Positions 2,600 to 47,410 of a stretch of DNA of 64,000 nt are shown piece by piece. Positions within the stretch are counted from its first letter, which is position 1. Each line of letters begins with the position of its first letter. Where the stretch lies: assembly GCA_010909165.1 (NCBI GenBank), contig MU008231.1, positions 20,995 through 84,994 of the forward strand, given 5' to 3'. The DNA is from Anthoceros angustus (taxonomy: Eukaryota > Plantae > Anthocerotophyta). The notes beneath the pieces were generated by a model, which was given only the letters and a program-made list of their open reading frames with translations, had not been told where the DNA came from and searched no databases. The position numbers and the translations under genes are program-made.

Positions 2600-4805
2600 G
2601 ATGCAACATCTTCGCAACGCCATCATCCGCAGTCCTTCCTTCCATATGTTCCGAGCTTCCTCCCCGCAGAGCGCAAAACGTACATGTTTTCCGTATTATG
2701 GTTCGGTCCTTGCATTTAGTTGCTTCGCTTTGTTAGAGAAAACCCGTATGCCAAGATGAATGTGTCCGCAAGAAGCAATTTGTCGACGTGTTTCCGCAAC
2801 CTCATGCTCCGTCTGAGAGCGACCCCACGATCGCCGCTGGTGGCTGATCGTAAAATCATCTCCTCTAGGTACCGCCTTCAAATGCGCTGCATTTAGTCAC
2901 CCACCAATGGACTTTAATGAATGGGGCGCCACATTGAAGTCCACCAGAGAACTTTTGCGAGCCGAATGGTCGATTGTCGATCTGCCACAAGGCACCGCAA
3001 TCATGTGACTGTTTGTATCTCCAACACATCGCCGCTTCAAGCTTTCTTGTTCCGCCGCGCATCATCCCGCACGCTCCAACATACATGTCCACGGGCACTT
3101 GCGAACGATTGATGCTGTAAAATCTCACCTGTACAACCAACAGGCGATGCAACTCTTCATTATGTGTTCTATCGCATTGCCAAGGGGTCTTCAATCAAGA
3201 TGCTCACATGCTATCTTGTCCACGATGGTGATTGCTCACCTAATTCCTCCCACCAAATATCCTCACCGCGCCCAAATGGGTCCCGAGTTTTCCTCTAGTT
3301 TCCCACGCATTGCGCAAGACTTCTTTCGGATCTCTCCTCTCGCAACCGCTTTTTACTGGACCTCCAAATGAACCAAACGACTTGAATAGGAGTAGATGGG
3401 ACATTATTCAAAACTCCAAACCCTCGTCCGGTGACCAGATTCACTGGAATATTGTTTGCCCCTCATCAGAATAAGTCCGCTCACCTCGCTTTCTCGGGTT
3501 ATTTTGAACCGATGTCGAAAAGATATATTGTGCAACTGCTTTCACCGCAAGAACTTTTATAGCCACCTTACCATAAGGTATTGGCCACACAAACTTTAAG
3601 TCCGAACTTCTTTCACCTCCATAATTTTGGTTTGGGCGATATGCATTCTCCAAAATACCGCTTTGGGCAACGTAAAGCTTCCTTCGCAAGCACTGAAAAC
3701 CTCGAAAACATCCGTCAACTGGTCATGAGTGTGCCCAACCGGAGGAATCCTACTTTTACCTTCTCAAAACCTTAAGCTCTACCAACATATTCGTGCGAAT
3801 AGCGGCATTCTTATTCTCCCGCAAGATTGTCGAGTTGAAGATAAAGAACCTTTGGTAGTAGTCCTCGTAATTTGAAATGACATGCGGATATTGGCTATAG
3901 TCGTTTGCATCGTTCGGATGTTCCGTATGCCATGAAGAGTTCCGACATGGTGTAGTTATAAATCATGCACCCCACAACATGGACGCCGATCAAACCTACA
4001 TCCGACAGTCCTTGGGTAAACGCGTGAAATGTGGAAGCTGGTCTTCGTTGGTCCATCCTGGCCGATGGATATCCCGATATACTTTGCCGGGTCTCCATAA
4101 CATTTCACGCTTGATGCATTTTCTCTCTCGACTTGAGTGTGCCGCCTCGATCGCCTTCAAATGCTTCGCAAAATAATCACCCAAACAACGTTGAGGAATA
4201 AACCGCCTGGAAGGAATACCAACGAATACCGAGGCGCACCGCGACTTCACAACCACGCCTCCGGCCGCAGCAGACAGGCGCCCGAGATTATCGCCGAGGC
4301 GCCCGACCGACACGCGCCGCACGCCGCACCATCCCCCTCGCATTGCCAAAACACAATTTCACATCAAGCCTCACCTTGTTTTCTCTGTTTTCTCGCTCTT
4401 TATATTTCGTTTGAGGTAATCGCAGTTGTGCACAAGGCAAACCGATTGCTCTTGAATTTTCACCTTGTGAAGTGCGAGCCCAAAGTGACAAAAGTAGGAA
4501 TGAGAAACATCAGATCAAAGCGCACGCATATGTTGCTTGTATTCTTGAAACACCTCGCCTTTTGAGTAAGAGTCGGAAGGTGATACACTTCAATGTTTGG
4601 CATTCTCTCGGCAATAAGCATAAGCAGTTGGTTCATCCACGCCAGAGTCAAGCCGATCTTGGCCGCCTCACGCGTATGGGCATCACGCAATGTTTCCGAC
4701 CGCCTCGCCGCTTCTTCGCACTGCCAGACCCGATACAAACGCGGCCTCAAGGCCTCTACAACAATACACTTTTCCTCGTCCGACAAGAAACGAGTCTACT
4801 CCTAA
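2600..4805 (-). pseudogene. Sola-like DDD DNA transposase, 3' part (unit 1), interrupted at 4805 by LTR element B
   Basis: Minus strand, stitched: GISI-DGMDQ..QLPHFTRLPKD (~4070-4010); LPKVLYLQLDNLAGENKN..MLVELKVFEKVKVGFL-VGHTHDQ (~3860-3715). C-terminal GAPFIKVHWW and LAYGFSLTK match the unit 2 transposase (VPFMIVHWW, LAYDFALTR). Confidence 0.75.
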
Positions 4806-7800
4806 TGTGGTAGGGAGAACCGGGCACTCCCTGTGTCCTCCCACTATAGCGGCCACACTTATCCCACTGCCGCCAGACGCTGGGTTTCCCCATGAGACTT
4901 GTGTGAAAGTTCGAGGTCTTGTGATGCCCGATCGCTACCTGCGTGACACACTTCTCGGCCTTCTCAACAGCAAGGCGCCTCTACTCTCCCTCTCACTGCA
5001 CCACTTGCCTGCTGATCGCCAACCCTCGACCCAACGACACAAAACAATTGGTCCTCGCCAAGAGGAGCCTACCACGGCGCCTGTGGACCCCGATTCACAC
5101 CGCGATTTCGTCCCTACTTCTAAGACCAAACTTCACCTACAACGACACAACACAATTGGTGTGTCCCGCCAAGAAGAAGAAGCCTACCACGGCGCCAGGA
5201 CCCCCGGTTCACACCGCGATTTCGTCCCTACTTAAGACCAAACTCACCCACAACGACACAACACACCAGGTGTCCCGGCCAAAGGAGCCTACCACGGCGC
5301 CTGTGGACCCCCGGTTCACACCGCGATTCGTCCCTACTTAAGACCACTCTCTCCACCTGTGGAGCGCTTTACTTGCAGATTTGGGATCTGGCCCTTAGGC
5401 TCGTGGCCTTCCACTAACACCTACACCTCTAATCCTCTACTCATCTTCTCATCTCCTCATCCTCTTCCTCCTAGTCTAACCTCGATCGCTTCGACCGCCT
5501 CTGCAACCGCCTGGGTCCGCCTCCACCAGCAAGTTCTTCCTTGGGCGGCTATGAGTTTGACACAGACAATGAGAACCTCCGTGGAGTCTTTCCTGTAGTC
5601 TACCCTCAAGCCGAGAGTTCTCGGGCATTTGCCACACACCCAAAGCAAAGCAATTTCACAGCCATTCACAAGGGAGCAACTCGTTTAGGCACTTGCATGA
5701 GCAAGTCCTCCACCAAGCACTCACCACCGCGACTTCCTCTCTACCACATGTGTTGGCTCACACGACGAAATTCCTCTGAATGGCAAAGGACTCTGAGCGG
5801 AAGCGCAAGACATGATACTTTACTTTGTGAAATCCTCCTCCTCTTATAGGAGGCCTTCCACATACAACCTCCCTTGGGTGACCCGCCGCAGTCACCTTTT
5901 CCAATATTCTATTATTTCCTACCAAGATTTAAGGCTGGCATCTAAGTCTATGTCGATCCTAGGTAAATTCTATTCTAGCAACTTCACCTATGGCCACTCT
6001 TTAATGTTGCCAACCTACACCACCTATCCTTCCCATTCCCCAAAGCTCATTTATGGTCATTGACAATTCTAGTCCTTATCTTGCAGGGTGGCGTTCCCTT
6101 CCGTTGGTCTTCTCATCCCCTTTTGCTGGTCTTCCCGCCCCTCCTCGACTTTTGGGGCACCACCTTCCGCCCTTCCGACCTTCTTCTCTCCGGGCGGCGC
6201 CCGATTCCTCTTGCCATCCAGGCAATCGCGCCCCTTCCGCGCACTCGAATGGCCCATCTTCTAGCCTCCACTGACGGCGCGCTCCTTCAAAGGGCACCCT
6301 ACCGCGGTAGTCTGGCAGACTACCGGGGTAGGCTGACTACCTACCATGGTAGTCTGGTCCCTATCTCCTTCCCTCTTCCTCATCGGTGATGGTCCCTGGG
6401 GTTGAGATCCTTTTTGCTCCTTTCCTATTGTTTGATTTGTCCATACCTATCATGGAGCATGTCTTCAAAGGTTCCTCCCCCCATTTGCTGACCGATGTTG
6501 TCACCTCGCTAATTCCTCCGGGCCTTCTTTGCGTTGGTCTCCTCTCTTGGCCCTGGCTCCTCCCTTATCCGTGGGGTGAGGGAATTTCTTACCCTCCCTT
6601 CCTACGGTCGGACCATACCCGTCTTCCACCGGCATTGCTCTCAACCACCTTATCTCCTCTCGGGGGGTCATGCCGACCCCGCCCTTCATCCTCAATCGGG
6701 CCTTCGTGGCTGGCTCCCCTCCCACGCTCAGGGTCGCACCGCGTAGTCGCGACTACCGGCGAGTGGACTACGGTGAGTCGGCAGACTACGTGGTAGGTGG
6801 TCACTCACCGTAGGGTGACCCACCTTGCTCTGCGCCATCTCCTTCCTTGGCCCGAGGACTCATCCTCCTCCTTCACTTGTGGAACAAGTGACCTCCTTGC
6901 TCTGCACTTATGTTGGTAGGTTGAGCTCCTCTTTGTGATTTTCATTCTCCTAGGGAGACAACCTCCTCCTTAACATCTCTGTGGGGCCAAAGTCGCCTCT
7001 ACCATCGCCTCCCTCAATAGCACTTGCATCCATTGCCTCCTTGACGACCCTGCACGTGGTCTGCACGCGCCAGGCTGCCTCAGCTGGCGCCTCCCTATGG
7101 TGAGTTGCCTTCTTCCTCCTGTTCCTTATGGCACTATGGGCTCCTCTCTCGCCATTTCTTCTCCAAACTCCTCGGAGTCCATATCGCTTGTGACCTCATC
7201 AAAATCTAAGGCCCCGGCTTAATGCATGAGGGCCTCCCTATCATCATCGTGTGGCCCAAGCATCCTCCTCTTCACAATTATTGTAGGCCTCCACACACAC
7301 CATGCCATCGCCCAATATTTTTGGCAATGGGTTTACACTCAAACTACCACCATGCGCTTCATGAGTTGGGGTTTCTTGGCCTTGAAACCCTTCACGGCAT
7401 CCACACCCTCCTCGAACCAGCCTCATCCTTGCCTTGGCTCTTAGCAATCCCATGAGGAGAACAAACACCAAGCTAAGCACCAAGAACACTAAGGACGTCC
7501 CCTCTTAGAAGAAATTCACTCTCAAAACCAAGCCAAGGCACACCAAGACCCAAGAAATTGATGCCACAAGAAAAGAGAACACCAAGAGGAGATGGGCATC
7601 ACTCTTAAGAAGGCACACACAGGCGCACACAAGCTCTAGCTCCCCTCTGCACTTTTAGACAGGCTCCGGTCTTCTCATGCGACAATTATAGCAGAGCTCC
7701 TAAATTGCAGCCATAGATTTGAGTGGTTTTGCAAGCATGTGGCCATATCCCATCCATTATTTCACACCAGCCATAACCTCTAATTTCTATCGTAGCCATC

Positions 7801-9975: not shown

Positions 9976-9988
9976 TACTCCCCACCTC
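9976..9988 (-). promoter_or_regulatory. Polypurine tract of element B
   Basis: Reverse complement GAGGTGGGGAGTA directly precedes TGTGG of the 3' LTR. It ends the same way as the element A PPT. Confidence 0.8.
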
Positions 9989-9989
9989 A

Positions 9990-14913: not shown

Positions 14914-14927
14914 TCCCGACAGCGCCA
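14914..14927 (-). promoter_or_regulatory. Primer binding site of element B (TGGCGCTGTCGGGA)
   Basis: Lies 4 nt inside the 5' LTR end, starts with TGG and is identical to the element A PBS. The cognate tRNA was not assigned. Confidence 0.85.
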
Positions 14928-14931
14928 AAAA

Positions 14932-28717: not shown

Positions 28718-28720
28718 TTT

Positions 28721-28734
28721 TGGCGCTGTCGGGA
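28721..28734 (+). promoter_or_regulatory. Primer binding site of element A (TGGCGCTGTCGGGA)
   Basis: Lies 3 nt after the LTR-terminal CCACA. Confidence 0.85.
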
Positions 28735-28844
28735 GTGTCATTGTTGTCAAGACCTTAGAGTAGACTAACCTTGTCTAGTAGTGTATTGGGAGTCTTGAGT
28801 GATACATGGATGCTACCCATTGAGTCCGAAAGTTCCGACCCACC

Positions 28845-30420: not shown

Positions 30421-31099
30421 TCCCAAGGAGCCGTGCCCATGCACGTGGAGGATGCCCTTATGGCTGTTTGGGAGGATGCGGAAGCCATGGTGTTGCGGGA
30501 GCTAGATGGACTGGGGTGAGGAGACTACTACGGAGAGGCTGCAGCCATGGTCAGGCGCACTAGGAATGAAAAGCTAGGAGGAAGTCATGGAAGAAGAAAG
30601 AGACGGAGGAATCACAAAAAGTCAAGAGAGCACTCCAAGCCCGGAGGGAACGGATCCGAGGAGACACTTGAGAAGGAGAACCCCGAGAAGGAAGAATCAA
30701 GGAGTGAATCGCCTGGGGCCATGCCGGAGAAAAAGAAGTTCCAAAGAAAAGGGAGAGGAACCCCGAGTTTCCACCGGACGCCGGAAGTCATGGAGATGAT
30801 AGAGGAGGAATTGACCAAGACAAAAAAACCGCCGAGCTGTGATCCCGAGATCGCAGAAGTCCTCGGTTAGCAACCGCGCTAATAAGGCGGCCGCAGCAGC
30901 AAGCAACCGACGTTGTTGCTAAGGGAGCAACCGCGATCGCAAGAAGGAGGGACCGATCGAGGACCATTTAACCTTGCCAAGCCATCATGGATCGCATCCA
31001 TCACGTTTGGTCAACTATTGAAGGACAACCCAAGTGCAACAAGTTCTGAGGGCCTTGCAAGAAGCGCAACCCAAGAGGAAGAGGCGATTGCCCAAGCCG

Positions 31100-34000
31100 G
31101 GACCAAGTGACCCTACAACAACCTAGTGTCCATGATAGACCAAGGGCCGGAGTGCAAGTGGAGATCCCGGTCATCAAGCGGTTCCCTTGGATACCGGATC
31201 CGGTGAACATCATGACTAAGGGATAGCAAGGAAGCTTGGGTTGACATTGAGCATACCACACAGTTGAGATTACCGACATGTCAAAAATGCACTGTGGAGA
31301 ATCAAGGAGTAACCACCATCATAGGGACCATTCCCTATCTCATGGACTATGTGGTTATCCAAAGACAAGGCTGTGGTATGACATCCTATTGGGAAGGACC
31401 TGTCAGATGGCTCAAGATGCAAGATGACTTGGGGAGGAAGGAAGTGGCTTTTAAGCCAATGGATTGGGACCCCAAGACGAAGGAGGCGAATTTGTTTGAG
31501 TTGGAGGGATACCACGTGGGAGACTCCTACAAAGAACGGAAGGATACACATCACCGGAGAAACATCCGACTGGAGGAAGAAGGAACTGGACAAATTTCCT
31601 TTTGCACATATCGCATGGTCGATGAGGAGGAAGAGTATAGGAGGGATATCCCTTACTCCCTCAATTTGGTGGACCGCTTTGGTTCATGGAGGACCGCATC
31701 AACAAGGAGAGCGACAAAGAACGCTGCGAGCTGTTAAGGAAGCAACATGATTCGACGGCTAAGCAACAAGACGACGGGCTAAGGAAGCAACGAGGACAGA
31801 ACAGGAAGGGTGAGCGAGATCATTCGATTCACCTCGAGGACCTATTTAGGAGTGGATGAGGGAAGAGGACCTCGTGAACCGGAGGAAGGGTTTGGTGAGA
31901 GTTCAAGACCCGTGGAGCGAGAATGGGTACAAGGACGAGATTAAGGATGTGGAGGTATTGCCCGAAGGTGAAGTTTGCACGACTGGACCAGTTGGAGGAA
32001 GGAATGAAACACCCTCCGAGTTCATCGACGTGTTTGCCGAGGTGATGATATGAAGGGATTCCCAAGAAGTGGGGAGCATAGGATCGATTTGGAGCCGGAG
32101 CGACTCCGCATTCCCCAATACAAGTCGAACCCAAAGTACTCACAAGGTGAAGGAGCAGCTTGAATTGTACTTGAAGGCGACGCCATCTATCCAATCGTGA
32201 ACACGGAGTGGGTGGCTCCAATTGTTGTGGTTCAAGAAGCACCGGAAAGATTCGAGTATGCCAAGACCGGAGGAAGCTCAACAAAGCAACCAAGAAGGAC
32301 CATTTCTCCGCCATTCATCGACAACATCCGGACTTGGTGGTCGGAAGATGTGTACTGCTCTGACGTACTGGGTACAATCACCGCACTTGAGGGAGAGTGA
32401 CTGCCTCTAACCTTCACACGGATTGGGGACCTTCGATACAAGAGGAGTGCTCGGATTGACGGGCAGGTTCCTTCATGCGGAGCATGGTTGAGATCTTCAA
32501 GGAGTATCTCCACAAGTTCATGGAGGTATTCCTAGATGATTTTGTGTGTTTGGGAGTGTGGAGGAGCACCGGATCACTTAGGCTTGGCGAGGTGTCGTGA
32601 AACTCAACTTTGCCTACATCCCGAGAAATGCTACTTTGGCATGCGGGAGGGATTTTGTTGGGCAATTTCAAAGACGAGGCATCAAGTTGATCCGCATAAG
32701 GTGAAGATGATTGTTGCCCGAAGCTCCAACAACTCTCAAGGAACTCCGGGGTTCCTTGGCATGGTGGGCTACTACCGACGCTTTGTGCCTAACTTTGCTA
32801 GGAGCTGCCTTTGACCAGCTTGTTGAGGAAGGACCAAGAGTGGACCGACAGAGGGAGGCAGATTTCAAGATTTGAGGACCACGTTGGTACCAACCCTCAA
32901 GGGACCGGATTGAACAAGAAGTTCCATGTACGTGATGTTTCCGCCGCCATTGGTACGCCTTGAGCCGGTGGATGACAAGAAGAGGGACTACCCAATCTAC
33001 TACGCAGACGGCAACTCACCGATGCGGAGCGCAAGTACACAACAATAAAAGGGAAGCCCTTGGGATGGTGTATTCAGAAGGAAGTTCCATTATCTCCTCT
33101 CCTATGAGTTTGTGTTCCATGTTGACCATTTTGCTCTCAAGCATCTTGTCAACAAGGCGGATCTCTCGCATAGCTCGTTGGATCTTGCACAGGTAAGAGT
33201 TCACATTCACGGTGGAGACACGTGAGGGGAAGCATGTGAATGCCGACTACTTGTCCCGCTTGAAGACGGAGAAGGTGGAGCGTGATCAAGAAGATCATTT
33301 TCCTGGATGAAGCTTTGCCGGGAGGAGGATGAGGAGAGTGCTAGGCCCAATGCCAAGTTGATCGGAAACGGAGGCAAAGACCAAATGAGAAGGGAGGGAG
33401 AAGTTTTGTGCCCCATGAGGAGGTCTTTCGCTTTTAGCAACAGTCGATACCAACACCGTCACAACAAAGAGGTTGTTCTATACTTCCGCACTGTTAAGCG
33501 AGACAAGCCGCATGGGGGCCGATGGAGTTGAGAGGTTGTGGGTCAAGGATGGTCAAAAGGACCGGGTTCTCGCCTTGCATGAGGAGGAGGAGGTCACTAC
33601 GCCAACGTGACTGTAAGAAGATCTTAGGTGGTATTGGTGGCCAACCTTGCACATAGATGCTAGGGAGTTCATCAAGCTGCCAGGATGCATGTCAAAGGGT
33701 TGAAGCCAACCAGACCACACAAAGGGCCATTGGTCCCTATCCTAGCCTTGGCGCCTTTGAAAAGTGGGGATTGACTTCACAATGATTCACCCAAGACCAA
33801 AACCAAAATCAATATATTCGTAGCAACGGACCACCGCACTGCATGGTGGAAGCTCAAGCCTTGCCCGTGGACACAGAATGGTGGCTGTGTTCTTGTTTGA
33901 GTACATCATTACAAGGTACGGTGCCCGTTGGAATTGGTTAGCTGGGTACCCATTTCATCAACGAGGTGATCTCACACATGGTGAAGTACTTCAACATCAG

Positions 34001-34520
34001 CCAGGAAGACCACCCCTACAACCCCAAGGCGAATGGACTCACGGAGAAAGCTAATGGATTGCTTTTGTGATCCTCAACAAGTTGAACCTCACCTACACCT
34101 ACGATTGGAAGCTTCACTCGGCCAGGGCGACAGTGAAAAGGTGACCACACACTGCACTACCTCACCTATGGGCACTCACCACCATGCCCATTGAGTTTGA
34201 AGTGCCAACGCTTGAGAGTCCAAGAGCATAAGAGGATGGAGGAGAGCCGCTTGGAGAGGCTCATAGGCTTTGTTCAAAGACATGGAGAACAAGGAAGCCT
34301 GGCCCCAAACGCCAAGAGAAGAGGAAGGAATGGCATGACCTAAGTCGCAAAAACAAGAGTACGTTGTTCGGGACTTGGCTGTCAGATGACAACAGTACAT
34401 GCACTTCGGAAGTGCATCTTAGATGGATGGGTCCCTACAGGTGTAAGTGTTCGACAATGGATCCATACACCGCGGCAACTTGATGGATTCTCGCCAATGT
34501 GGTCAATGAAGAAGTATTAC
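31100..34520 (+). pseudogene. pol (protease, RT, RNase H, integrase) of element A, frameshifted
   Basis: GEHRIDLEP; EWVAPIVVV; KEYLHKFMEVFLDDF (YxDD-type motif, ~32520-32541); LHPEKCYFG; EFVFHVDHFALKHLVNKAD; integrase PLVPILALAP..YNPKANG; HLRWMGPY. Confidence 0.88.
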
Positions 34521-34540
34521 AATAAGGGACGCCAACAAAT

Positions 34541-34551
34541 GAGAAGGGGAG
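34541..34551 (+). promoter_or_regulatory. Polypurine tract of element A
   Basis: GAGAAGGGGAG followed by TA and TGTGG. Confidence 0.85.
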
Positions 34552-34553
34552 TA

Positions 34554-37500
34554 TGTGGTGACCACATGGGTACTGACGAAAGGAGTGTTTTTGTTTTGTG
34601 TTTAAGTTAGAATCGTGTGGAGTTGGAATGAAGTAGGTTAGGAAATAAAGAAAAGTCTACTAGAGCCTAGTAGGAGGAAGAGAGTCTAGTCCCGATCCCG
34701 GATGTAACCTCGAGGGTTGGCTGCTCGACCGTTGCTAACGCGGCTAGGGCTGCTACAGTGGCTGCTTATGACCACAACCGACGGAGCTGCTATGGTAGCA
34801 ACCAAGTTGGAGTTTCTTTCGATGACTTCGAAAATCCAATCGATGGAATCACAAGGAATACCCAAACGGAAGTAACGGGGTCCTATTGGCAATTAAGTCC
34901 AGCGGGAAGAGTATTTGCATCGAATCCAAAGTGATCGAAGACGGCACCGCTACCGGAATTCGAGCGACCGGTGGAGGCCGGAGCGAACGCCGACGGATGC
35001 AAGGCGAGGTGTCGCAGTGATCGGAAGTCGCCAGAACGAGCGCCGAGAGACCAAACCGTTTGGCAGATTGAGAGGGCGGAGGAAGCGGAGCGCGCAAACC
35101 GGAGGCAGCAGGCCGAGAGGCGGCGAATGAAGGTCTGTGGAGAACGCCCAGCGCGGCGTGGCGGGGGCAATGGGAGGAAGCCGGGCGCAGAAAGCCCATG
35201 CGAGTGGGGAGTAATCGGGCCGAAACTCCGGAGAAGGCTAGCGCGGCTGTGTGGCGATCGTGCAGAAGCTAACAAGAGGTGGCAAGCGGATAGCTGTGTG
35301 AAGGGGGCCGGGAACCGGCCACAGGAAGAGAAGTGTGCAACGGGCAGCTGAAATCGAGGCACGCACCGGGAGGTCGCGGTGGCGACAAAGCGCACTAGGG
35401 GTCGCTCAACCGTGTTGCGATACACCTCCAAGCCTCATACAACCGAGGTAGGTGGATGAGGCCCCGAGCCGGTGCGGAGGTGTCCGTGGGGTTTCACGCA
35501 GAGGAGCCGAAGTCGACACGTAAAACTCGAAGCATAGACGGTAGCCGGACACTTTGCTCCTGTAAGCTCTAAGCTTGTGTCATAGGACAGGAGCATGGCA
35601 CCTAAGAAGAACTCCGGCCGCCATTGAGGCCATTACGACCGCCCAATGGCCCAATATGGGGCACTGGAGAGTGAAGGGTCTTTGGTGGCTAAGCATCACC
35701 GTCCTTCATGGACAAAAAGTGGTGCTACAATAGCCTCGTTGGTTTTGGAGTGTGCAGCATGAGGGAGAAGGCCATTGGGGAAGGCAACGTGAGGACCAAC
35801 CCCGCCGGAATATTCATTGTTCCGCTTATGAGAGACCAAGAGGAATGTGGCGGATAATCATTGACCTTTCAGAAACCATCTCCTCAAAAGCGCAGGAGGC
35901 ACAAGCGCCATTGCTCCCACATTGTCTAGAGTGGAGAATGGGTCACCAACAAGTTAGACCTCGGCCGGATTAGCCAGTGATCCTGGCTCTCACCTCACTA
36001 AGAAGGAGCACATTGTCACCATTTCTTGTCTTTCTATGAGGTGGTGAGAGGGTCCAAGATAGATTGGGCCAGGATGTTCTATGACACAAGTGTGGAGAGG
36101 GACCACTTGACCCTACCATCACCTAGCCCCTCGCCTCTATCTCCTTCTTAATCCACGTTTTGACCATGCCAAGTTGCCGGAGGGAATGGAGATGGTCTCC
36201 TTTCACTGGAGGCCGTGTTTGAAAGAAGGAAGCCCAAAGAGGAGGAGGAAGAGGCCATCTCCGGGCACTGGGGAGTGAAGATGAGAAGTCCAAGTGTCCA
36301 TGAAAGGAATGTGACGCTTAAGGTAGCACCAAGGGTTAACAAGGCAATCAGTTGCTAAGGCCCCAACAGTACCAAGAGGAGCCGGGGAGCAACGGGACTC
36401 CAACAACACCTAGAGCCACAAGAGCACGACGGGAGCTCACCGATGTATAAGACAAGGGCAAGGCCCAGCACCAATATCCTGTGAGCCTGGAAACCACAGT
36501 CAACAGAGGAATCACAACCTTGGGCACAGCCGAAATGATCCGAGAAAGTGACCACTGCTCAAGGGTGGCCTCAAGTATACCCTAAGTTGTGACAGGGGCG
36601 GCCACCGCGATGAGACAGGAAGGAGGAGCCCATCCCGAAGGTTTGGGGCCTAACATCACCCTACGAGTTGGTTTCAGCTATGGCACGCACTGTGGGCAGA
36701 TGGAAGATCTAGTCCTCCTCCTTGTTAGGTTTACAGCGCAGAAGGAAGCAACAGGGAGAGCAATGGAGGAGCTCCAAGATGAAGAAGGAGAAGGAGGTTT
36801 TGGAGGGACAGCTTGGAAGTGGAAATAGGGAAGGTCCGAGAGAGTTGCCAAGTCTAAGGACCAAGCCCTCATGGCTCAGCCTCCGACACAAAAGCACCAT
36901 AGGAGAGAGCTGCACGTCATCTCGTGATGCACAAGTGCATGAAACTGGATGCCTCACGAGCGCCAGGAAGGAGAGGGACGAGGCTAGGAAAGGTGGAAGG
37001 AGGCCAAGAGGGCCGGATTGCAAGGAGGGCCACCGTGGAAGATGAGGCTCCTATGGAAGAATCGAGTTAGCAATGCCGAGGAGGTTGCTAAGCAAGCAAC
37101 CGCCGTTGCTAGGAAGCAACCCTGCACTGCTAGGAAGCAACAGGCTCCAAGACCAAAGCCAGCTACAAGGAAGAAGGGGCAACAAGACGGAGGAGGACAA
37201 CAGCCGGGGAGCGGTAAGCACCGCCTAAGAAGTCTAACTTCCCAATGGTGCATTAGATTGAGGGATGCTTATCAAGATAATCATGTGCCCGGATTCTCCT
37301 TGGCCGGAGAGAAGATTGTCACCCCGAAAGTTTATGTTGTTGTGGGCAGGGGGACATGGAGGTACTTGATCCATGCCTTGACGGCACTGGATCCTACCTA
37401 TGGGTTGGACTCTTACGGAGGAGACTCTCACCGACCCATCCAGATTCAAGAGCTCACCGAGGAGGAGTACTGCCATGCGGCGAGCACAAGAGAGGGAAGA

Positions 37501-38847
37501 GTCCAGCTCGAGGAGGTGGAGATTTTGGGAGAGATTGCCCAACCAGCCAAGAGGGAAGAGCAAGAGGAGAACATGGGCTAGGCGGCCTAGGAGGCCTGTG
37601 AGGGATATAATAGGGTAAGTGGCCTCAAATAGATGAAGGCCCATGTGTTATAGACTAATCTTCCTCATAGTGGATAGAATTAAGAGATAGGCCTCTAGGA
37701 TTGGTAGGCTAAGACCGATTGGTATTTTTGGCAAGGCCAAGCTACTTTGTGGCTGATCTTGGGTATAAGAGGCCCTCTTGATGAAATGCAAGCAATGTTG
37801 GCCTAAAGTCTTGGTGTTTGGGTGAGCACGGGGTTTGGGGGGTACCGATCCAGGTCAGTGAGTCTAGGCACGCCTCTGCTGTGAGGAGCCGAGAAGACTA
37901 CTGTTGCCCAGATCCGTGTGACCGATCCGCAAGAGTGGTGGAAAGCAAGGGAGGGAACTGGTCTCCTTGGGGAGTTCCCAAGGATAAGAGGAAGGGGTTG
38001 TGAAGCCGGGAGGCTGTCCATTCCTTACTCATTCTCTGCCTTGTCTAGTACTCACCTTGTGTTTGAGTTTTCGTGGTGTGAGGTCATGTGGGAAAAGGAG
38101 ACAAGGCGGGAGCCTGTGGGTGGAAGAGAAGGTCAAGTGAGACGGAACCCGTGGGTTTGTATGCTTGGAAAATGTGAGCGAAAAGTGAACTGTGAGAGGA
38201 GTGGAAAATGTCACATGGAGAGTTGATTGTGGGAGAGAAGTAAGAGGGATTGGAGAAGACTGTAAGTGATGTTTGCTGAGAAAGTGGAGATTGAATGAGG
38301 CCGTGAGGTGTGAGAACAAGGAGCGAAGGGGGTAACTTGTGGAGCCGTGAGAGCCTGGGGAGGACGGAAGCTTGGGAGGAAAGCTGAAAGGTTGGAGGGA
38401 AGAAAGAGAGATCCGGGGAAGTGTGAGTAAGGAGGTGGTGTGATCGGCAACCCCGATTGGTGGATCCGACTTTGTGGAAGGATAAGAGAGAGGGTCCAAT
38501 CTTATCCACTTGGACCCCAAGTGGGCCCACCTTCTATTAATAGCCAGCCCGAACCCGAGATGGGCCCCGCCTACTGCTAAAATAGAGGGTGGTTGCTAAG
38601 ATAGCAACCGGCCCGCTGCTAAGGTAGCAACAGGTCGCGTGGCTAAGATAGCCATGTGTCCGAGTGTTGTTAGGATAGTAGCTTGGTCCGTAGTCGCTAG
38701 ATGTTTTGTATGTCCGTGTTTGGTTGGATTGGCTATGTTTTGGTTGTCTTGACACGAAATCACTCCCTTGGGTACGAATCTCAAGTCTACAACGATAAGA
38801 GGGTAAATGGGCCCTTTGTGACCACTTGGTTTAGAAAATCACCCACA
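34554..38847 (+). repeat. 3' LTR of element A (4294 bp)
   Basis: Direct repeat of 24432-28717, preceded by the PPT. Confidence 0.92.
35595..37581 (+). pseudogene. LTR-embedded ORF, 3' LTR copy
   Basis: Same start (MAPKK). The C-terminal 187 aa are open (37018-37581, ending EEQEENMG*). Confidence 0.6.
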
Positions 38848-41086
38848 CTGGTGATGGAGAAGAAGTGGGCAGAGGGCGGAAAAAATTAAGGAAGTCGAGG
38901 AAGCATGCGTAAGAGGAAGCGCTGTCTGGACAATGACCACGTATGCCGAACGATCGGAGCTCCTTTCGCAGGAGGATGACTATCTCGAGATGGTTCGCAC
39001 TGGCCTACAAGAAGCGGGTGCAAACCACAACATTCGACATTCACATATCGGTACTACGCCCCGCTCATTTCTAACGCAGATGCTCGATAAGGAAGGTGGA
39101 TGAGGCATGGATGAAGTGCCTTGTTCGATGCGCATGTGTCCTCAGAAGGAAGGGACGCCCCACTTGTGCATGATTGATCCAAGACAAAGGCTTGAAGAAA
39201 GAAGATGCACGAGGAGATCGAGCTCAAAGATTACACCCTAGGGGTGCCGGAGGGAACTATTGCTATGCCGCCATGGTAATCTCAAATGTATCCGCGGAAG
39301 ATAAATTTCAATGGCTTGAGGGCCATGTATATGCGAGTAGAGGAAGAAATGCGGTGCCGCGCTTGATCACAATGTGTATGCGCATAAGAGGAAGAAGCTT
39401 GGTTTTATTGAACAAGTACGCTACATACATGATGAGCTTGAGATTTGGCACCGGACACACCCGATGGAAAACCGATGCGGGGAAGTTCAATGTGTACAAG
39501 TTGCTGGGATGCTGGAGGAGGCTGGAAACTCCAAGGACACTGATTATGTACAGAAGATGGTGGACAGGAAGACTCTGGCGCTGAGGATTGCGAGGTGCAG
39601 GGGTAAATTGTGGGAGAACGTGGACACCATTTTCCGGATGTGGGAGAAGTGCGAACTCCCGCAGGTGAACAAAGACAATGTGACGACGGGAGCGAAGCAA
39701 ACGGAAGCCACAAGACCCAACTACAACAGTACCGGGCCCTAATCGACCCTCGTCCGGCTCCAATGCTCTAAGGGCATGGAGAGTATTCCAAGGAGTCCCA
39801 AGGACGAGAAAGGTGAAGAGATGTTGATAGCAGGACCAAGGTCATCCAAGGAAACCGCAGCTAAAAGATATGGATACGGATGTTGGCAACGGAAGAAGAT
39901 TAACCTTATCGAGCATGCCTTCGAAGGCTATGAAGTGTGCGACCTGAAGTCGCCAAACAGCTTCCCAAGCATACCGAGGCCAAGGAATTGGCGAAGTTTC
40001 ACAAAGTGGAAAGTGTATTCGAGTGCGTCCGGGCGCATTTCAGAGTGCGCGACCGGCGACTCTTTGTTGTTTGACCAGAGGCGAACGCGAGTGCGCCGGC
40101 CGCGCACCGGCCGACAAGACAGCGCGCTGGCCGACCGCGACTGGCGCCGGCCACGGATCGCGCTGGCCGACCGCACTGGAGTGCGCGGCCGACCGCGACT
40201 GCATTTGCCGCCGGGCCGTTCATGAGGGCGCCACCGACCGGCATTGCGCGCCGGCCGACGCCATCATTGCCAATGAGTTCTGCTCGACCACCGCCTCGTT
40301 GCTTGCGTAAACCGGAGACATTGAGGATTTGAAAGCTCGCCAAAACCTTTCCAAGATTTTGTTTATAGCGAATCGAAACGGATGGAAGAAGAGCGAAAAC
40401 AAATGGCCGACAAGGACATGGATGCGGTGCAGCCAGAGTGCCTCGGGTCTTGGACAAAGTGGCATATCGTGGTGCATCGAGACATTTTGGATATGAAAGG
40501 ATTTTTGCCACCGAGGAGGTATACTCTTCTTTTCTCGCGACCTCCCTCGAGGAATTGAAAGAGATCATCAGCTCTTTCAACGAGAAGACCACGAGCGATG
40601 TGTTCCGGATAATTCTTATGCATGGGGTGGATGGGGTGATTCAAGCCGTGGAGGCTTTGAGGTCTTGGTGCGGTGAAAGGAGTCATTCGACCGGTATGGG
40701 AGAAAACCAACATCCCACCTAAGCAGGCCGTGGAAACAGTGGAATATTTGAGTTGGAAGCGCAGAGGAGAGTCCAATGTCGGAAAAGCTCCTCTTTTCCG
40801 CAAAAGACATCAAACAGCCAAGAGTTATCCGACATGGACCGTGGTGAAGAAGTGATTTACCACATCGGTGATAAGATGGTCGACGCCATATCGTAAACCG
40901 GGCTTATTAGGCATGTTGGTGAACATGTTCTCCAACGAAGACGATCGATTGTTGACGCGCGGATCGTGGATCATTTTTGGTGGCCGGATACAACGGAAAA
41001 GGAACGTTGTGGCCATTGACAAAGACGCACGATGCTCAATGTATATGTCACAACGAGTGAACGGAGACGACGAGTTCAAGAAATAA
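38848..41086 (+). pseudogene. ParB-like domain + beta-class N6A/N4C DNA methyltransferase-like gene (unit 2), frameshifted
   Basis: FDIHISVLRPA..IRKVDEAWMKCL (~39035-39122); YTLGV-AGGNYCYAAM (~39232-39275); HVYA..LDHNVYAHKRKKLGFIEQVRYIH. MTase: IVVHRDILDMKGFLPPRRYTLLF then DLPRG (40539-40553); EELKEIISSF; VWEKTN (40694-40711); PYRKP-GLLGMLVNMFSNEDD-IVDA..GS-GSFLVAGYNGKRNVVAIDKD (40886-41025). Confidence 0.75.
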
Positions 41087-41199
41087 CAGATAAGTTTTCG
41101 GGGCCCTGCAAGTTTTGGGCAAAGGAGATCGCGACGGAGGCATTGACAGAAAATGCAAGTGTATAGCTTGCTTGGAAAGAAGGGTCGAATGAAGGACTC

Positions 41200-43651
41200 A
41201 GACGTGAGACGACCGCCGTTGAAGACCAACCGGCATTGACAATATGGGATGAAAACGGCACACTACCACCGCAACAGAGGCTCCGACGCTCGCTTTGCAG
41301 TTGAAGGTGATGACTTTGGTGACACGGAAAAGGCGTGATTTGGAAAATGTAGAAACGGTGCGATTCGGAGCTCAATTTGGTTGAAGTAGATGACCCTTTG
41401 GGTAGCTGTGACTTGTAGATGAGGGGGCTCGTCCGTTGACCGTATAATTCCTGCTTTTGACCCTTCGTGGAAAATGCCCGACTTTGATTTGAATGCATAT
41501 TACGTGTTTTGGACCCATAGTCTGGCACTGCCCTTTCCCCAGTAAGTCTCGGAAGGGTCGCGGACGGCCGGCGCCTGAAACAAAAGTGTGCATACATGGA
41601 AAAACCTCGATACTTACATTGTTCTAAGTGGAACTCGCCATTCAAAGACATCTCTTTAAAAACACGTGTTTTGCTTGATATGAAAGGGTGGCAACCTCAG
41701 CGAGCGCAAGAACTACCAAGAACTCCGCGAGTGAGTCGTTGAAGTATTTCCGTTGTTAAAATACCGCAGCAACGGTTTTCGATGCTGCGATGACCTAAAG
41801 AGGAAAATAAAAGACGCCGGTCGGACCACGCACAAGGTGAGATGGCGGTCCTTATTCCGCATTCACCGGATGTCCGCGAACTCAACCCCATTGCCTCATA
41901 CCCTATTCGAATGAAGGCGGGGCTTGAAACCGTGTGCACATTCTTGGCGCGACCTTGTTGTTGCGTGCGGACAAGAATGTGGAGCTCGAGACTCCACAGG
42001 AACAACAACAGAAGGAGCGAAACGGAGGCTGCCGGCACAAGTGCTTGAGGCGGCTAAGTTCATTGGTATTGCCATAGATGGTATGGACCAAAAAAGCGAG
42101 TTGCCCCATTATGATTGCCAAAAGGCGGTTGATTAGGAGCCCTTGTCGGGCTTCACGTTCTAGGTGTCTTGGTGTTCAACTACTTAGTGCGCACAGTGTA
42201 TTTGAGTTTCCGAATGTGAGAAATGATCCAATGATGGGCAGCGTGATTGATGTTATCAATACAGGAGGGCGCTCCCCTATTCTATACTTGCGGATGGACA
42301 ACATGCTCAAAACAAGAATCGGAGGTATTGGCATGTCATCCATGCTTGTGGCGAAGGTATCTTCAAAAATCAAGGTGGGGTTTCTTCTTGTTGGCCATAC
42401 CCACGATCGATTGACCAAATGTTTTCGAGGTTCTCGGTTGTGCTAGGGTTGAAGGATGCTTTCACACCCAAAATGATAGGGTTGCCGGAGCGGGCGACAC
42501 CCCATCACCGCAGATTCACATATCAAGGAGGTGCCGACTTCAAGACCTATCTATCGAAGGGGATCTGCAACGTATGACTTGCATAATCCTTTCAACACCA
42601 ATTCAAAATAACAAGGGAGAAGTGCTATCGTCGAGAGGACGGATCGTGCTAAGATGCAAGGAGTTTTCAAGTTCGATCACCGTCGGAGGGTGGTGTGCGC
42701 TATTACGTTGGGTGCCACCACGGGTGATTGTGGCGCTCCATTGTTGCTGGTCCCATCACATGCCCAAGGTAAAGGAAAGGGACATGCAAAACGAAAGGAT
42801 GCCCCTGATGTTCGTGTCAATGACGATAGTCTCCAAGGCGTAGTGGTAGTGTAGTGGCGGGAGTCCATGAAGTAAAAGCGGGCCTAGAACGCACCAGGCG
42901 ACATATGAATGTGGAGCAACTATCATGGTGGGATACGTTCTGGGATGAACAGGTAGCAATAGCCGAGAGACTTGCAGCTGGCATTCCATTCCCGTTGGAG
43001 ACAGAATGGTCTTGGTACACTCGCGATGAAGAAAACGAGGTACCACCTGTAGACCCTCCAGACTCAACTTTGGTTGATCCTGCAATGGCCAGACGGATTT
43101 TTGGACATGGTCGGGAGGTGTACAGGGGCACAAGTGCGGAGGGAGGGCAAGGGCGAGGCTCGTCGAGGTTGTGTGAAGGAGATTGAGGAGGGAATGATGG
43201 TTGGCTGCCGGGATGATCCAGAGGCGACCATTCGCTCGCAAAAGTGGTGGAGGTGGACCATGATGCTGCGGTCCCTTTCATGATAGTTCATTGGTGGCGG
43301 ACAGAGAACAATGATGCATTCGAGGGAAGGTACATGGAGGAGTTTGTGATACGAAAGCGCCCACCAGGTCGTGGGAAAAAAGTGCGGCGGTCAAAGAATG
43401 GAGGCAGAGGGCGTCAGGAGAAGCATTTGCAAAGCCTCAACTTCCCAGAGACAAATGTGCTGGCCTATGATTTCGCGCTGACAAGGAACAAGACGTTGCA
43501 GAGGACGACAATGAAGCTGATAAAGACTAAAGTCTTTGAGTTGCGTTCAGAGCCGGCTGATGAACCGGCGAGGCTTCCGCCAGCTGACACGAATGTCATG
43601 CCCGAAGACATGATTGACTTAAGACCTCGACAATGTGGAATCAACGGATGA
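41200..43651 (+). pseudogene. Sola-like DDD DNA transposase (unit 2), frameshifted
   Basis: AKFIGIAIDGMDQKSELPHY (~42052-42110); SPILYLRMDN; KIKVGFLLVGHTHD (~42366-42407); C-terminal LSWWDTFW, VPFMIVHWW and VLAYDFALTRNKTL; stop at 43651. The 5' boundary is approximate. Confidence 0.8.
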
Positions 43652-45844
43652 GTCCAGACGTGGTGGTGGACCACCGGATGGTCCGGACTGGAGAGGAGCC
43701 GGAGAGGCAACCTAATATTGTCAACTTTCCGCCTTGTACCAGAACGTTATGTCCCCTCGCTTGAATGCAGTGGATTGTTTTCGTCTTTTCGTGGAAAGGT
43801 TTAACTGCCATCATCTCTCTTTGTAGGAAGTTGACGGTGTGATAATGTCCGAGCATGTAACGGCGACTATGTAAAACCGATCCCAATGTGGTGCTCTAAT
43901 TTTAACAATGTTCGTGGTTTTGTCCAGCTTGAGAGTAGCAGTCGAGGTTTCAATGGTGACCATGCAGGTCATCTATGTTCTGAGCTTGTAGTGTGGCGAA
44001 GTGTCCCCAAAGGATGGTCACGGATGTCCGTGGCATATGTATGCCGCAGCGCGCGCAATGTCGTTTATGTGTTCGGCAAGGACGCCCTATTTTTGGAACG
44101 GGGGGACCGTAATGACTATGGGGTGGAACGGGGTCCGAAGGGCGCAGCGAACGGATGCACACCAGCGAAACTGAGTACCAAGACGGGCTCAAAACGGCGC
44201 CTTCCTCCACTGCCCACCGCCACAGAGGTTGTCTTCCACCTCCTTTGTGGTTTTGTGCACGCCATCCATCCCTCCGCGGAGAGCCGTCCTCACGCCATGC
44301 TCCTCCACCTCCTTCCACCTCGATTGTCCGGTTTTGCCTGTTGGTTCCGCCTCCTCCTTACGTCCCATCCATCCAACCTTCCTTGAACTAACCTTCGCTT
44401 TTGCAGCCTTCCGGATGAGGACTCGCAGAGGTGGCTACGAGTCACCACCTCGTATCACAAGGGAGGATGTGGAGGCAAAGCGAGCCAAGGCGGAGAAGGA
44501 TGGAAGTTGCCCATCCAGGACTTGTGTGGAGGCCATTTGGGTCTCCAGTGCAAGGTGGAAAGACGGTATGGGTGGCCATCTCCTTCCATGCAGGGTGGCA
44601 GCATCGTAGATTTTCCAGATGCAGTGCAGGTAGGTAGCCAGGGCTGGAAGAGGACTATAGGATAGCGAAGGAGGGGTTCCCGGAGGCGAAACGGGGGTGC
44701 AGAACTCCAGCACAGCAGGAAGGAGGGGTGAAGGAAGAGCCCGAGACTGCCCCGTCCAATTGTTTAGAGCTTCCGTGACCTTGCAGCTGCCCGTGAGTCC
44801 ATGCAACAGCTTACGCGAATGAAGGTTGCCGCAGAGGAGGCCGCCGCCGGAGCGGGAGTGGAAGTGAAGGAGGAGGCGTAAGCACTTACCTGCTACCTTT
44901 TCGCTTGAGAGTTGAGCATGGTTGTCATGCATGCACTAACGGGCATTGTGTGTAGACACGATGGGGACACCCTTGGCAAACCGGAGGAGCACTTGGAGAT
45001 AGGAGCGTGAAGTGGGTTACCTAGGTTTTTGCAAGCGATCTGTAGACTAGAAGCGGGGCGGAGGGGAAGGGAAGGAGGGAGAGGGGTTGGAGGTGCGTAG
45101 AATCATAGCTTTCTCATGGCTTCACCGAGTCGAGTTGGGGACGCAATCACATGATTTTGTGTATGTCAAGTTTTAGCGTCGATGTGCAAGCCATGGTCCG
45201 CCGCCAAGTGTGAAGCGGAAACGGGGTTTGAGTTTGGGGAATCGGGAATGTTTTGTCGTCACCGGACATGGCTATGAGCCAACGGTCAATGTCACATGGC
45301 ATGGACTAGAGGCGGTTATATGAACTACACCATATCGGTTTTCCAATACTTTATTAGTGAGAAATGTATTCAAGATATACTTTGTACCTTGGGGATGTAT
45401 ATTTGAATAATATTATTCCATGTATTTTACATGAATAACCCTAAGGCCCACAAACAAAGGAGCCCGCTAGTGATGCATTCTCATCAATTGTGTAACATGA
45501 CGGTCTACACTTTTCCATATGCCGTAAAGGTAGCTTTGGTCGTAATGTATCCCAAAAGTGACATGATTGAAATAAAGCCTAAATAAATGATCTAGTCTGC
45601 ACGCCATAAATTTATAAGGATCTCTACTTTTTCTCCCCAAATGCCTCTTTTGTTTAACCATGAGACATCGAGGTGTGGAAATATTGCCAATAAATTTCAA
45701 GTTTTGATGAAGTGGAATGGGTTTGGGTGTACCGTGCGTGGTATTTTTAGCAGCCGTTTCCCACAAACCCTCAAAATCAACGTTTCAAGTTTACTTAAGC
45801 TTAAATTTTGATGACAAATTTGGCCCGTCTCCTGAAAGTGGAGT

Positions 45845-47410
45845 GTGTCACTAGCCCTAAGGAGACCTTGTTTTTTGAAGACTGTACACTCCGATATCTG
45901 CGGCCCAATGAGCACACACAGCTTCGGAGGCCACTCCTACTTCCTTACCTTCATGGACGAGTGGAGCAGGTACTGCCACATTTACTTCCTTCGCCATAAG
46001 GATGAGGCCCTCACCTGTTTTCAAGGTTTTGTATTAGCAGCAGAACGACAAACTGGATTCCAAGTCTACACCCTCCGCAGTGATAATGGCGGAGAATACA
46101 CCAGCACAGCCTTTAATGAGTTCTGCAGATCCAAGGGGATCCTCCGCAAACTAACTGTACCACACACCCCAGCTCAGAACCCTTTGCAGAATGCCTCAAC
46201 AGATCCCTCCTTGAGATTTCTCGCTCCATCCTGAAGCTATCCTGTCTCTCTCGAGGCTATTGGGCTGAGGCCGTAGCTACAGCCAACTACCTAAAAAACA
46301 GGCTTCCTACAAAAGAGCTGCCAGGTACTACCCCTTTTGAGCGCTGGACAGGTCACAAACCCCGCATCTCTCACCTCCGCATCTTCGGCAGTCTTGCTTT
46401 TGCACATGTCCCAGATGCTACTCGTCGCAAATGGGATGACAAGAGCTGCAAGCTCCTCCTCATTGGCTACTCAAATCAAGTAAAAGCCTACTGCCTTTTC
46501 GCCACCAGAGAGGTAATCCTTTCCCACAACGTTCATTTCCATGAATCCCTCGTTCTCAACACTTACATCACCACCTGCACATACACCAGGTAGACGTCAA
46601 GGCTGCATTTTTATATGGGACTCTACATGAAGACATTTACATGCTTCAGCCACCATGGTTTGTGATCAACATGGGACCTCTACGCTATGCTCTAGGAGTA
46701 CAGTTCAAATTCAAGAAGGAAGAGCACACCTTTTTCATCCATCAAGAGCATTACATCAGCCAATTACTGGAAAGATTCAACCTGAAGGACGCCAAGCCAG
46801 TATCCACATCAATTGCCTCAGGAGAGAAGGTATCAGCAGAGGACTGCCCCAACACTCCAGAAGAAATGCACGAGATGAGAAGCGTCCCTTTCAGTGAGGT
46901 TGTCGGAAGCCTGCTTTACCTATCAATTTGGACAAGAACAGACATCGCACAAGCCGTGAATATAGATAGTGTCCAGATATCTCTCTAATCCGGGGAAAGT
47001 GCACTGGACCTGCGTCAAGAGAATACTCCGTTACTTAAAGAGGACAAAGTCACACGGACTTCTATACAGAGACCATCTGCACCTCATCCACTGAGGCAGA
47101 GTACGCAGCAACAACCCTAGCAGCCAAGGAGATACTATGGATTCGCCAGTTCCTACAGACATCGATGAGAAGCAGGATCAGGCAACTCAGCTGCACTGCG
47201 ACAACCAATCAGCGATAGCCATGACACACAATTCAGTGCTGCACACGAGGACCAAGCACGTGGAGATTCAGCATCACTTTATTCGACAAGTGGTGGCCAA
47301 CAAACAAGTTTCACCACGCTACATCAATACAAGCGACAACACTGCAGACCTGTTAACCAAGGGACTCCCCAAGGCTCTTCATGACAAGCATACCGAAGGT
47401 ATCGGGTGGA
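45845..47410 (+). pseudogene. Truncated, internally deleted Ty1/Copia pol (IN-RT-RNase H)
   Basis: VHSDICGP..YFLTFMDEWSRY..LRSDNGGEY; WAEAVATANYLKNR; QVDVKAAFLYG; VVGSLLYLSIWTRTDIA; LHCDNQSAI..RTKHVEIQHHFIR..ADLLTKGLP. Confidence 0.92.

Follow-up and report, generated by a model that had tools for sequence, protein, structure and literature searches.

A probable pseudogene of a transposon-borne amino-DNA methyltransferase with a putative ParB-like module, next to a Sola1-type transposase remnant in Anthoceros angustus

We analyzed a 64-kb stretch of Anthoceros angustus contig MU008231.1, hereafter called the window; all coordinates are window positions. The plus-strand region 39087-41086 is very probably a pseudogene of an accessory gene of a Sola1-type cut-and-paste transposon, that is, one with a DUF7869 transposase. 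The intact protein is predicted to contain an N-terminal ParB/Srx-like module, a helical middle and a C-terminal beta-class (circularly permuted) amino-DNA methyltransferase. The remnants of this gene and of the adjoining transposase are as follows.

39087..39478, plus strand: putative ParB-like N-terminal remnant, from a frameshift-tolerant alignment with a profile of three relatives (L009, L013 and L014)
39551..39821, plus strand: remnant of the helical middle region, between the ParB-like and methyltransferase parts (49.7 bits)
40040..40300, no strand: GC-rich stretch containing short direct repeats, located after the middle region and before the methyltransferase part
40481..40559, plus strand: motif IV region (18.1 bits, one frameshift at 40538)
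40549..41086, plus strand: methyltransferase core remnant with motifs V-VIII (WEKTN), PYRKP, motif I and the post-I strand (VVAIDKD) (43.9 bits)
42047..43534, plus strand: Sola1-type (Pfam DUF7869) DDD/E transposase remnant, heavily frameshifted

Region 39087-41086 consists of only short stop-free pieces spread over three frames. The motifs quoted by a first-pass annotation of this DNA were all found on the plus strand where it had placed them. RKVDEAW lies at ~39090, GGNYCYAA and HVYA are in the stop-free piece 39174-39581, and LDHN is in the piece 39341-39739. IVVHRDILD is in 40325-40555, DLPRG in 40497-40673 and VWEKTN in 40661-40852, and both PYRKPGLLGMLVNMFSNEDD and VVAIDKD are within the stop-free piece 40856-41083. 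The gene ends with a stop codon at 41084-41086. The motifs follow one another as DLPRG, WEKTN (~40690), PYRKP (~40886), the two GS pairs of motif I (~40960-40990) and VVAIDKD (~41005); judged from these matches, this is the permuted beta-class order IV, V-VIII, X, I.

Comparison with intact relatives, described below, indicated how far the copy has decayed. In the ParB-like remnant, GGNYCYAA aligns with the family sequence GGNHGARA and LDHN with SHNID, and the Arg of the GxxR patch is lost. The motif IV region reads DILDMKGFLPPRRYTLLFS, a frameshift and then DLPRG, and its family counterpart is ...YTLAVADIPYG. In the window, YTLLFS is thus followed after the frameshift by DLPRG (40539-40553), so that the catalytic Tyr is replaced by Arg and the aromatic residue is lost. 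The first-pass annotation had read DLPxG here and had expected DxPYG. Both readings held, since the relatives have D-[I/V]-P-Y-G and DLPxG is the right reading of the window after the frameshift. The unshifted frame (LLFSRPPSRN followed by a stop) was considered as a degenerate xPPx motif and rejected, because a +1 shift brings DLPRG into register with the family ADIPYG. Frameshifts at 40967 and 40989 divide motif I between two frames. Because the gene needs at least nine frameshifts in our alignments, has lost the motif IV Tyr and the GxxR Arg and has a split motif I, the window copy is dead and has no function left. The adjoining transposase (42047-43534) is likewise a pseudogene, whose alignment needs ~18 frameshifts.

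We searched the window with a hidden Markov model (HMM) of the full-length methyltransferases of the family, run with all filters off against the 2703 six-frame pieces. Piece 40369-40719 ranked first (E 0.002) and piece 40856-41083 second (E 0.03); 40661-40852 also matched, and the order of the pieces was colinear. A local profile-to-DNA aligner of our own, which uses HMM match emissions with 7 bits for opening a gap, 1 bit for extending it and 7 bits for a frameshift, was then used for frameshift-tolerant alignment. The methyltransferase profile scored 43.9 bits at 40549-41059 (plus strand). Among 254 other 1-kb tiles, drawn from both strands, the highest score was 20.8 bits, and 300 dinucleotide shuffles gave 14.8 +/- 1.7 bits (z = 17; Gumbel p ~6e-10). 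A ParB-plus-middle profile built from three sequences scored 49.7 bits at 39551-39821, as compared with 22 bits or less in other tiles and 15.1 +/- 1.8 bits for shuffles (z = 18.7; p ~3e-11). The traceback contained five frameshifts in the methyltransferase part (40672, 40730, 40885, 40967 and 40989) and two in the middle part (39710 and 39742), and the identity of the window methyltransferase part to the family consensus was ~30%.

Two sub-profiles gave marginal matches, both located where colinearity requires. The ParB-like N-terminal sub-profile had its top window tile at 39107-39430 (22.0 bits; local p ~1e-3), and with softer gap penalties the alignment widened to 39087-39478. The motif IV sub-profile scored 18.1 bits at 40481-40559 (local p ~1.4e-3). 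A tblastx comparison of contig L009 with the window also gave colinear matches within 39554-39821 and at WEKTN.

Direct searches with the decayed sequence were negative. Ten stop-free pieces of the region had no N6_N4_Mtase or ParB match in Pfam at E up to 1, and 20 stop-free pieces of the copy at this locus (copy 1) and of copy 2 (described below) gave nothing relevant in Pfam. Two pieces had no match in the PDB by phmmer, and piece 39341-39739 matched nothing in the protein Atlas or in a collection of 5.8 billion proteins. A search seeded with E. coli YhdJ, taken to represent PF01555, returned only close orthologues, and their HMM found nothing in the window. Five genuine N6_N4 methyltransferases, including two Pfam-verified phage fusions of ParB_N and N6_N4_Mtase, had no tblastn match in the region.

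The intact relatives were reached through the transposase. Piece 42078-42446 (Pfam DUF7869, E 1.4e-7) was searched against 1.84 billion representatives and returned 13 DUF7869 proteins. One of them, P0127, is encoded on the 6.1-kb metagenomic contig L009, where the transposase lies tail to tail with opposite-strand open reading frames (ORFs), the last of which matches PF01555 positions 177-214. A search with the core ORF of L009 gave 22 proteins. The full-length ones are 340-366 aa long, and all read ...YTLAVADIPYGFNAPGSEFD..., ...GIWEK(T/P)NIN... and ...NPYQKPVALG.WFV.HFSE.GDWVADLCCGTGSTLVAALL....GSAVDK.... Contigs L013 and L014, which both hold a ParB-like and a methyltransferase ORF, were added by scanning Joint Genome Institute (JGI) metagenomes with the ParB-like ORF of L009.

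The methyltransferase class of the relatives was supported by several profiles. P0136, P0137, P0139 and P0144 scored 30.4-32.9 bits with PF01555, for which the gathering score is 26.7. The PHROG 67 DNA methyltransferase profile (phrog_67) matched residues 83-301, motif IV included, with E 1.8e-12. An hhalign comparison with the ParB-methyltransferase of Streptococcus phage Javan320 covered 194 columns (E 1e-4) and paired GD...LAVADIPYG with GD...LVVTDPPYN, IWEK with IWKK, NPYQKP with HPTMKP and CCGTGSTLVAA with FLGSGSTLIAA. The motif order of the relatives (ADIPYG, WEK(T/P)N, NPYQKP, CCGTGST, AVDK) is the permuted beta-class order. The window is tied to these relatives by its alignment at 43.9 bits. 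The first-pass assignment to beta-class amino-DNA methyltransferases was borne out; the Pfam check that it had proposed gave a divided result, with no match for the window pieces, clear PF01555 matches for the relatives and no ParB_N match for either.

An AlphaFold model of P0136 (16 sequences) had a mean predicted local distance difference test (pLDDT) score of 53.7 and a predicted template modelling score of 0.54, with core blocks at pLDDT 70-90. In a Foldseek search of the PDB with this model, the top 38 matches were all beta-class N6-adenine/N4-cytosine (N6A/N4C) DNA methyltransferases. CcrM was first (2e-13), and TTHA0409, M1.HpyAVI, M.PvuII, M.RsrI, M.BceJIV, M.MboIIA and rotifer N4CMT came next. 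The structural comparison with M.RsrI and M.PvuII that the first-pass annotation had suggested thus agreed with its class assignment at the level of a predicted model of a relative.

In a 16-sequence alignment, motif IV of the relatives reads D-[I/V]-P-Y-G with D, P and Y invariant and the first Pro replaced; L009 reads D-I-L-Y. Motif I is conserved as C-(C/S)-G-T-G-(S/A)-T. The canonical motif IV, (D/N/S)-P-P-(Y/F/W), accordingly fits neither the relatives (D-[I/V]-P-Y) nor the window (D-L-P-R). The first residue of motif IV is Asp in N6-adenine enzymes (DPPY) and Ser in N4-cytosine enzymes (SPPY/F). As motif IV of the relatives starts with Asp and not Ser, we infer N6-adenine as the more likely target.

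For the closest pair of contigs, L009 and L012, the ratio of nonsynonymous to synonymous substitutions (dN/dS) was 0.12 in the methyltransferase gene and 0.17 in the transposase gene; in other contig pairs dS was saturated and dN was ~0.2. The purifying selection seen in these ratios indicates that the methyltransferase cargo is maintained by selection. On four contigs (L009, L011, L012 and L013), the methyltransferase gene lies tail to tail with a gene for a DUF7869 transposase or with the C-terminal end of one. Since the two genes are linked and selected in intact relatives, the methyltransferase is regarded as transposon cargo. The earlier proposal that a transposon carries its own DNA-modifying writer therefore applies to the relatives, whereas at the present locus both genes are pseudogenes.

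The transposase remnant was aligned with a profile of six relatives at 205.4 bits and shows IDGMDQ, LYLRMDN and GHTHD..IDQMFSRFS. The transposase of the Ectocarpus element Sola1-1_Ec32, inspected by eye in the published supplement, shares the signature ...QVDNTVAENKNN...MMVGHTHIQIDQIFS..., DN..ENKN...MVGHTH.QIDQIFS, and its best BLAST match is Repbase Sola1-1_PPa (PMC12477816). Because of this common signature and the DUF7869 match, the window transposase, previously described as Sola-like, can be named Sola1. The window contains a second, separate remnant.

2700..4900, minus strand: second Sola1-type transposase remnant (copy 2), with the N-terminal region included

Copy 2 scored 160.8 bits with the transposase profile and 40.2 bits with an N-terminal ORF profile. 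In a tblastx comparison of copy 1 with the rest of the window, only the C-terminal tail of the transposase matched copy 2. The N-terminal profile derives from a conserved ORF of ~540 aa upstream of the DUF7869 core (L012 3993-5612 and L011 4358-5929, both on the minus strand), which is Cys-rich (KYPCCEGLC...) and has no Pfam match. This ORF, which is also recognizable in copy 2, probably represents the exon for the N-terminus of the Sola1 transposase. Region 620-2479 (plus strand) was considered as a second ParB-methyltransferase and rejected; it scored 16 bits, which is background, with both profiles and had no Pfam match.

The ParB-like part was characterized mainly in the relatives. Their pattern is a strand at WKYQVL, then GGNHGARAKLA, which resembles the ParB/Srx GxxR helix, and then VEAWVFAGL...SHNIDQ. 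A protein-language-model search with residues 34-185 of the L013 ORF placed ParB_N or DUF6551 in 69 of the 100 nearest named Atlas clusters. The cluster that came nearest shares 201 features (score 0.97), and structural neighbours of its confident model are ParB_N proteins at template modelling scores of 0.58-0.65. The near clusters of this ORF (L013 198-1163, plus strand; residues 34-185) also include fungal DUF3723 (0.95-0.96) and a cnidarian cluster (0.97), so that DUF3723 may be a ParB-like domain carried by mobile elements of eukaryotes. In a low-confidence model (pLDDT 39), WKYQVL forms a strand and NHGARAKL the helix after it, and a PDB profile search with the ParB-like alignment returned one weak irrelevant match. 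The ParB-like identity, suggested by the language-model neighbours and the motif pattern, is probable and is the weakest link of our interpretation; the homologous cargo in Ectocarpus, discussed below, is likewise called ParB-like by its authors. The N-terminus read as ParB-like by the first-pass annotation thus gained a colinear region and Atlas and motif leads, but was confirmed by no profile HMM (Pfam, PHROGs, NCBIfam or hhalign).

The ParB-like and methyltransferase ORFs of L013 and L014 are separated by a gap that contains tandem arrays of a ~38 bp palindrome. Its core, GAGCGA(G/T)AC-NN-GTCTCGCT, had 22 matches on the five contigs, counting both strands, and every contig had at least one. 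Three kinds of place hold them, namely 5' of the ParB-like ORF, within the gap that separates the two ORFs, and immediately past the methyltransferase stop; the positions are as follows.

L013 83-101 and 1341-1405: palindrome sites
L014 1746-1968 and 3220-3407: palindrome sites
L009 4253-4358: palindrome sites
L011 1169-1250: palindrome sites
L012 139-157: palindrome sites

The array is a candidate binding site for the ParB-like domain of the element itself. At the corresponding place in the window (40040-40300), where the relatives have a gap or intron with palindrome arrays, there are three copies of GGCCGACC in a 66-bp span and two copies of GGCCGACCGCGACTG.

In an intact system, the ParB-like module would bind the palindrome arrays around and inside the gene, and this binding would hold the methyltransferase on the DNA of its own element. 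The enzyme would then methylate element DNA, more likely at N6-adenine. Such a mark would be a self-made signal that could time or limit transposition or interfere with host silencing. It is improbable, although worth stating, that less decayed copies in the same genome encode an active ParB-tethered enzyme that writes N6-methyladenine (6mA) or N4-methylcytosine (4mC) on its own element DNA. If true, transposons of a land-plant lineage would set an epigenetic mark autonomously, and plant amino-methyltransferases might have been domesticated from such enzymes.

The copy number of the sequence was estimated from a DNA run of the same organism. A total of 429 contig pieces matched 38848-43700 with at least 80% likeness, and for 173 of these the likeness was at least 99%. 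The summed word depth was 100-330 over 40468-41439 and 41764-43700, with a hole at 41440-41763, and the family is clearly multi-copy in this organism. No contig of the run bridged the junction between the methyltransferase and transposase remnants. Over the ParB-like part, the word depth from the contigs was 0-34, and most genomic copies may lack this part or differ strongly in it. In an RNA run of the same sample, nothing of the stretch was found.

Several observations weigh against the interpretation of 39087-41086 as cargo of a Sola1 element with a ParB-like targeting module. For the upstream ORF of the relatives, no ParB_N match was obtained in Pfam, PHROGs or NCBIfam at E up to 1, and hhalign with the phage ParB-methyltransferase found nothing in the ParB-like part. 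The AlphaFold model of this ORF (four sequences) was unusable at pLDDT 39 and was kept out of the fold search. The palindrome of the relatives is absent from the window. Within 38848-45900 we found no convincing terminal inverted repeats, target-site duplication or tandem repeats; the borders of the element are probably lost or lie outside, past the nested long terminal repeat (LTR) elements. Pfam covers only the C-terminal half of PF01555 (positions 128-217 of 221), and with a motif IV that has no first canonical proline, activity is only predicted even for the intact relatives. The relatives are from at least four samples, and their proteins are 59-90% identical to one another, so they represent one lineage and not independent cases. 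Binding, methylation and an effect on transposition are themselves what we infer. The pairing of transposase and methyltransferase nevertheless occurs in three deeply separated lineages, namely the relatives, the window (~30% identity) and, from the literature, Ectocarpus.

The gene order is a further point on the same side. In the window, the two remnants are on one strand and ~960 bp apart, while the genes of the relatives are all convergent and those of Ectocarpus are on opposite strands. The N-terminal region of the transposase was undetected in 41000-42150 (15.4 bits, which is background), whereas copy 2 retains it, and the window is a pile of nested insertions. The same-strand arrangement may thus be secondary, from two truncated copies or from a deletion or inversion that joined them, a possibility that we take seriously without favouring it; the position directly upstream of the transposase, as first annotated, would then not be native. 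The high word depth on both sides fits one repeated unit, and the hole between them qualifies this fit. What stands of the earlier description is that the genes adjoin on the same strand, and the window order may be rearranged or composite.

The function of the domain and the origin of the gene were also considered. The methyltransferase-like domain of this family may be inert and serve only as a DNA- or S-adenosylmethionine-binding module, a role proposed for the methyltransferase-like domain of DIRS1 or for METTL14. The departure of motif IV from DPPY and the partial Pfam match are consistent with this. Strong purifying selection nevertheless preserves D, P and Y in motif IV as well as the glycine-rich motif I. 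The phrog_67 and hhalign alignments extend over the entire domain, with motif IV included, and the catalytic Asp and the aromatic residue are kept, so that we consider an inert domain unlikely. Alternatively, the region could be what is left of a host gene, for an amino-methyltransferase domesticated in the manner of Marchantia DN4MT1 or rotifer N4CMT, that lies beside a transposon by chance. Eukaryotic host genes of the bacterial N4C/N6A type do exist. This origin is nonetheless very unlikely, as four contigs physically link the closest relatives with DUF7869 transposases, the DNA run shows many copies of the sequence, and motif IV is D-x-P-Y and not the TSPPY of DN4MT1. A chance resemblance of the motifs, with no methyltransferase gene ever present, would agree with the lack of a direct Pfam, PDB, BLAST or Atlas match for any stop-free piece. 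It is refuted by the two colinear profile matches of 43.9 and 49.7 bits, since no other tile of the window exceeds 22 bits and shuffles average 15, and we give it practically no weight. The pseudogene of a transposon accessory gene is the explanation that we adopt.

The surroundings of the gene are repeat-rich eukaryotic DNA with a G+C content of ~50%, made of nested retroelements as indicated by composition and self-BLAST. Two LTR retrotransposons were delimited.

5309-21777: LTR retrotransposon with LTRs 88% alike (self-comparison)
24432-38847, plus strand: nested LTR retrotransposon with LTRs at 24432-28717 and 34554-38847, 86% alike (self-BLAST and junction alignments)

The second element has TG..CA ends (start TGTGG, finish CCACA), and a polypurine tract precedes its 3' LTR. 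Position 38848 is the first base past this LTR, which abuts the methyltransferase region, and the first recognizable residue of the methyltransferase gene (~39087) is ~240 bp downstream of this old retrotransposon. The LTRs are unusual in length, 4.3 kb in the second element and 4.7 kb in the first. Extra partial LTR copies of the second element occur at 14930-17760 and 53565-55054. On the other side, Ty1/copia integrase and reverse transcriptase begin at ~45845 (Pfam).

Transposons with their own DNA-modifying enzyme are rare in eukaryotes, and they bear on the self-marking of mobile elements or the evasion of host silencing. A literature text search found no report of a Sola1 element with a ParB-like-methyltransferase module in land plants and no mention of DUF7869. 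The module, known once from a brown alga, is also present in the Anthoceros angustus genome as decayed multi-copy relics and, on metagenomic contigs, intact in uncultured eukaryotes. The intact copies offer testable parts, namely a selected enzyme with the unusual D-[I/V]-P-Y motif and a conserved palindrome array.

In Ectocarpus, the 21.5-kb Sola1 element Sola1-1_Ec32 carries a gene for a 1104-aa protein with ParB-like and N4C/N6A methyltransferase parts; the element is complete, its terminal inverted repeats measuring 282 bp and its target duplication 4 bp (PMC12477816, Genome Biol 2025). With reference to Iyer et al. 2011 and Petroll et al. 2025, the authors suggest that there is a class of accessory proteins which bind the element encoding them and modify it, and similar accessory proteins are cited for green and red algal transposons (PMC12477816). 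The novelty is thus lower than the first-pass annotation supposed when it knew of no such cargo in a Sola-like plant element. The two systems share the transposase type and the order of a ParB-like part and then an amino-DNA methyltransferase, the accessory proteins being likened by the published description. They differ in that Sola1-1_Ec32 is a complete element of a brown alga with its genes on opposite strands, whereas the window holds a borderless pseudogene on the same strand as the transposase.

A related arrangement is found in the Plavaka (KDZ-related) elements of Bostrychia, in which PAG2 and PAG3 are transposon cargo with a ParB-like part and a DNA-modifying enzyme (10.1101/2025.02.11.637652). 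Inverted-repeat arrays adjoin the ParB-like gene there, as the palindromes do in L013 and L014. Plavaka belongs to another superfamily, however, with ParB fused to a 2-oxoglutarate (2OG) oxygenase and an N6A-methylase fused to SET in a separate gene. ParB-linked N6A methylases are also known from chlorophytes, chytrids and haptophytes (Iyer et al. 2015, PMC4738411). Among land plants, Marchantia has the host genes MpDN4MT1a/b, which function in sperm and whose products make 4mC with a motif IV that reads TSPPY (10.1101/2021.02.12.428880). They are likewise of the prokaryotic beta-class amino-methyltransferase type, but no transposase link or ParB module is reported for them (10.1101/2021.02.12.428880).

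Among prokaryotic systems, ParB_N + N6_N4_Mtase fusions are encoded at the ParB-terminase locus of phages and plasmids, for example in Wolbachia phage WO and Streptococcus phage Javan320. Their domains follow one another as in the present family, and so do the motifs, in the beta-class succession IV, VIII, X, I. Identity to them is ~24%, the ParB part is not alignable, and their DPPY contrasts with the D-[I/V]-P-Y of the relatives. The eukaryotic family is also far longer, with a helical middle region and apparent introns, and rides in a DDD/E transposon. Compared with the solved beta-class enzymes CcrM (6pbd), M.RsrI (1nw6), M.PvuII (1boo) and rotifer N4CMT (8s9o), the model of the relatives shares the fold (E 2e-13 to 1e-8) at 13-21% identity and with the moderate mean confidence given above. 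Taken with the Ectocarpus element, this kind of system is already known, and the Anthoceros angustus copy is a decayed member of it in another lineage.

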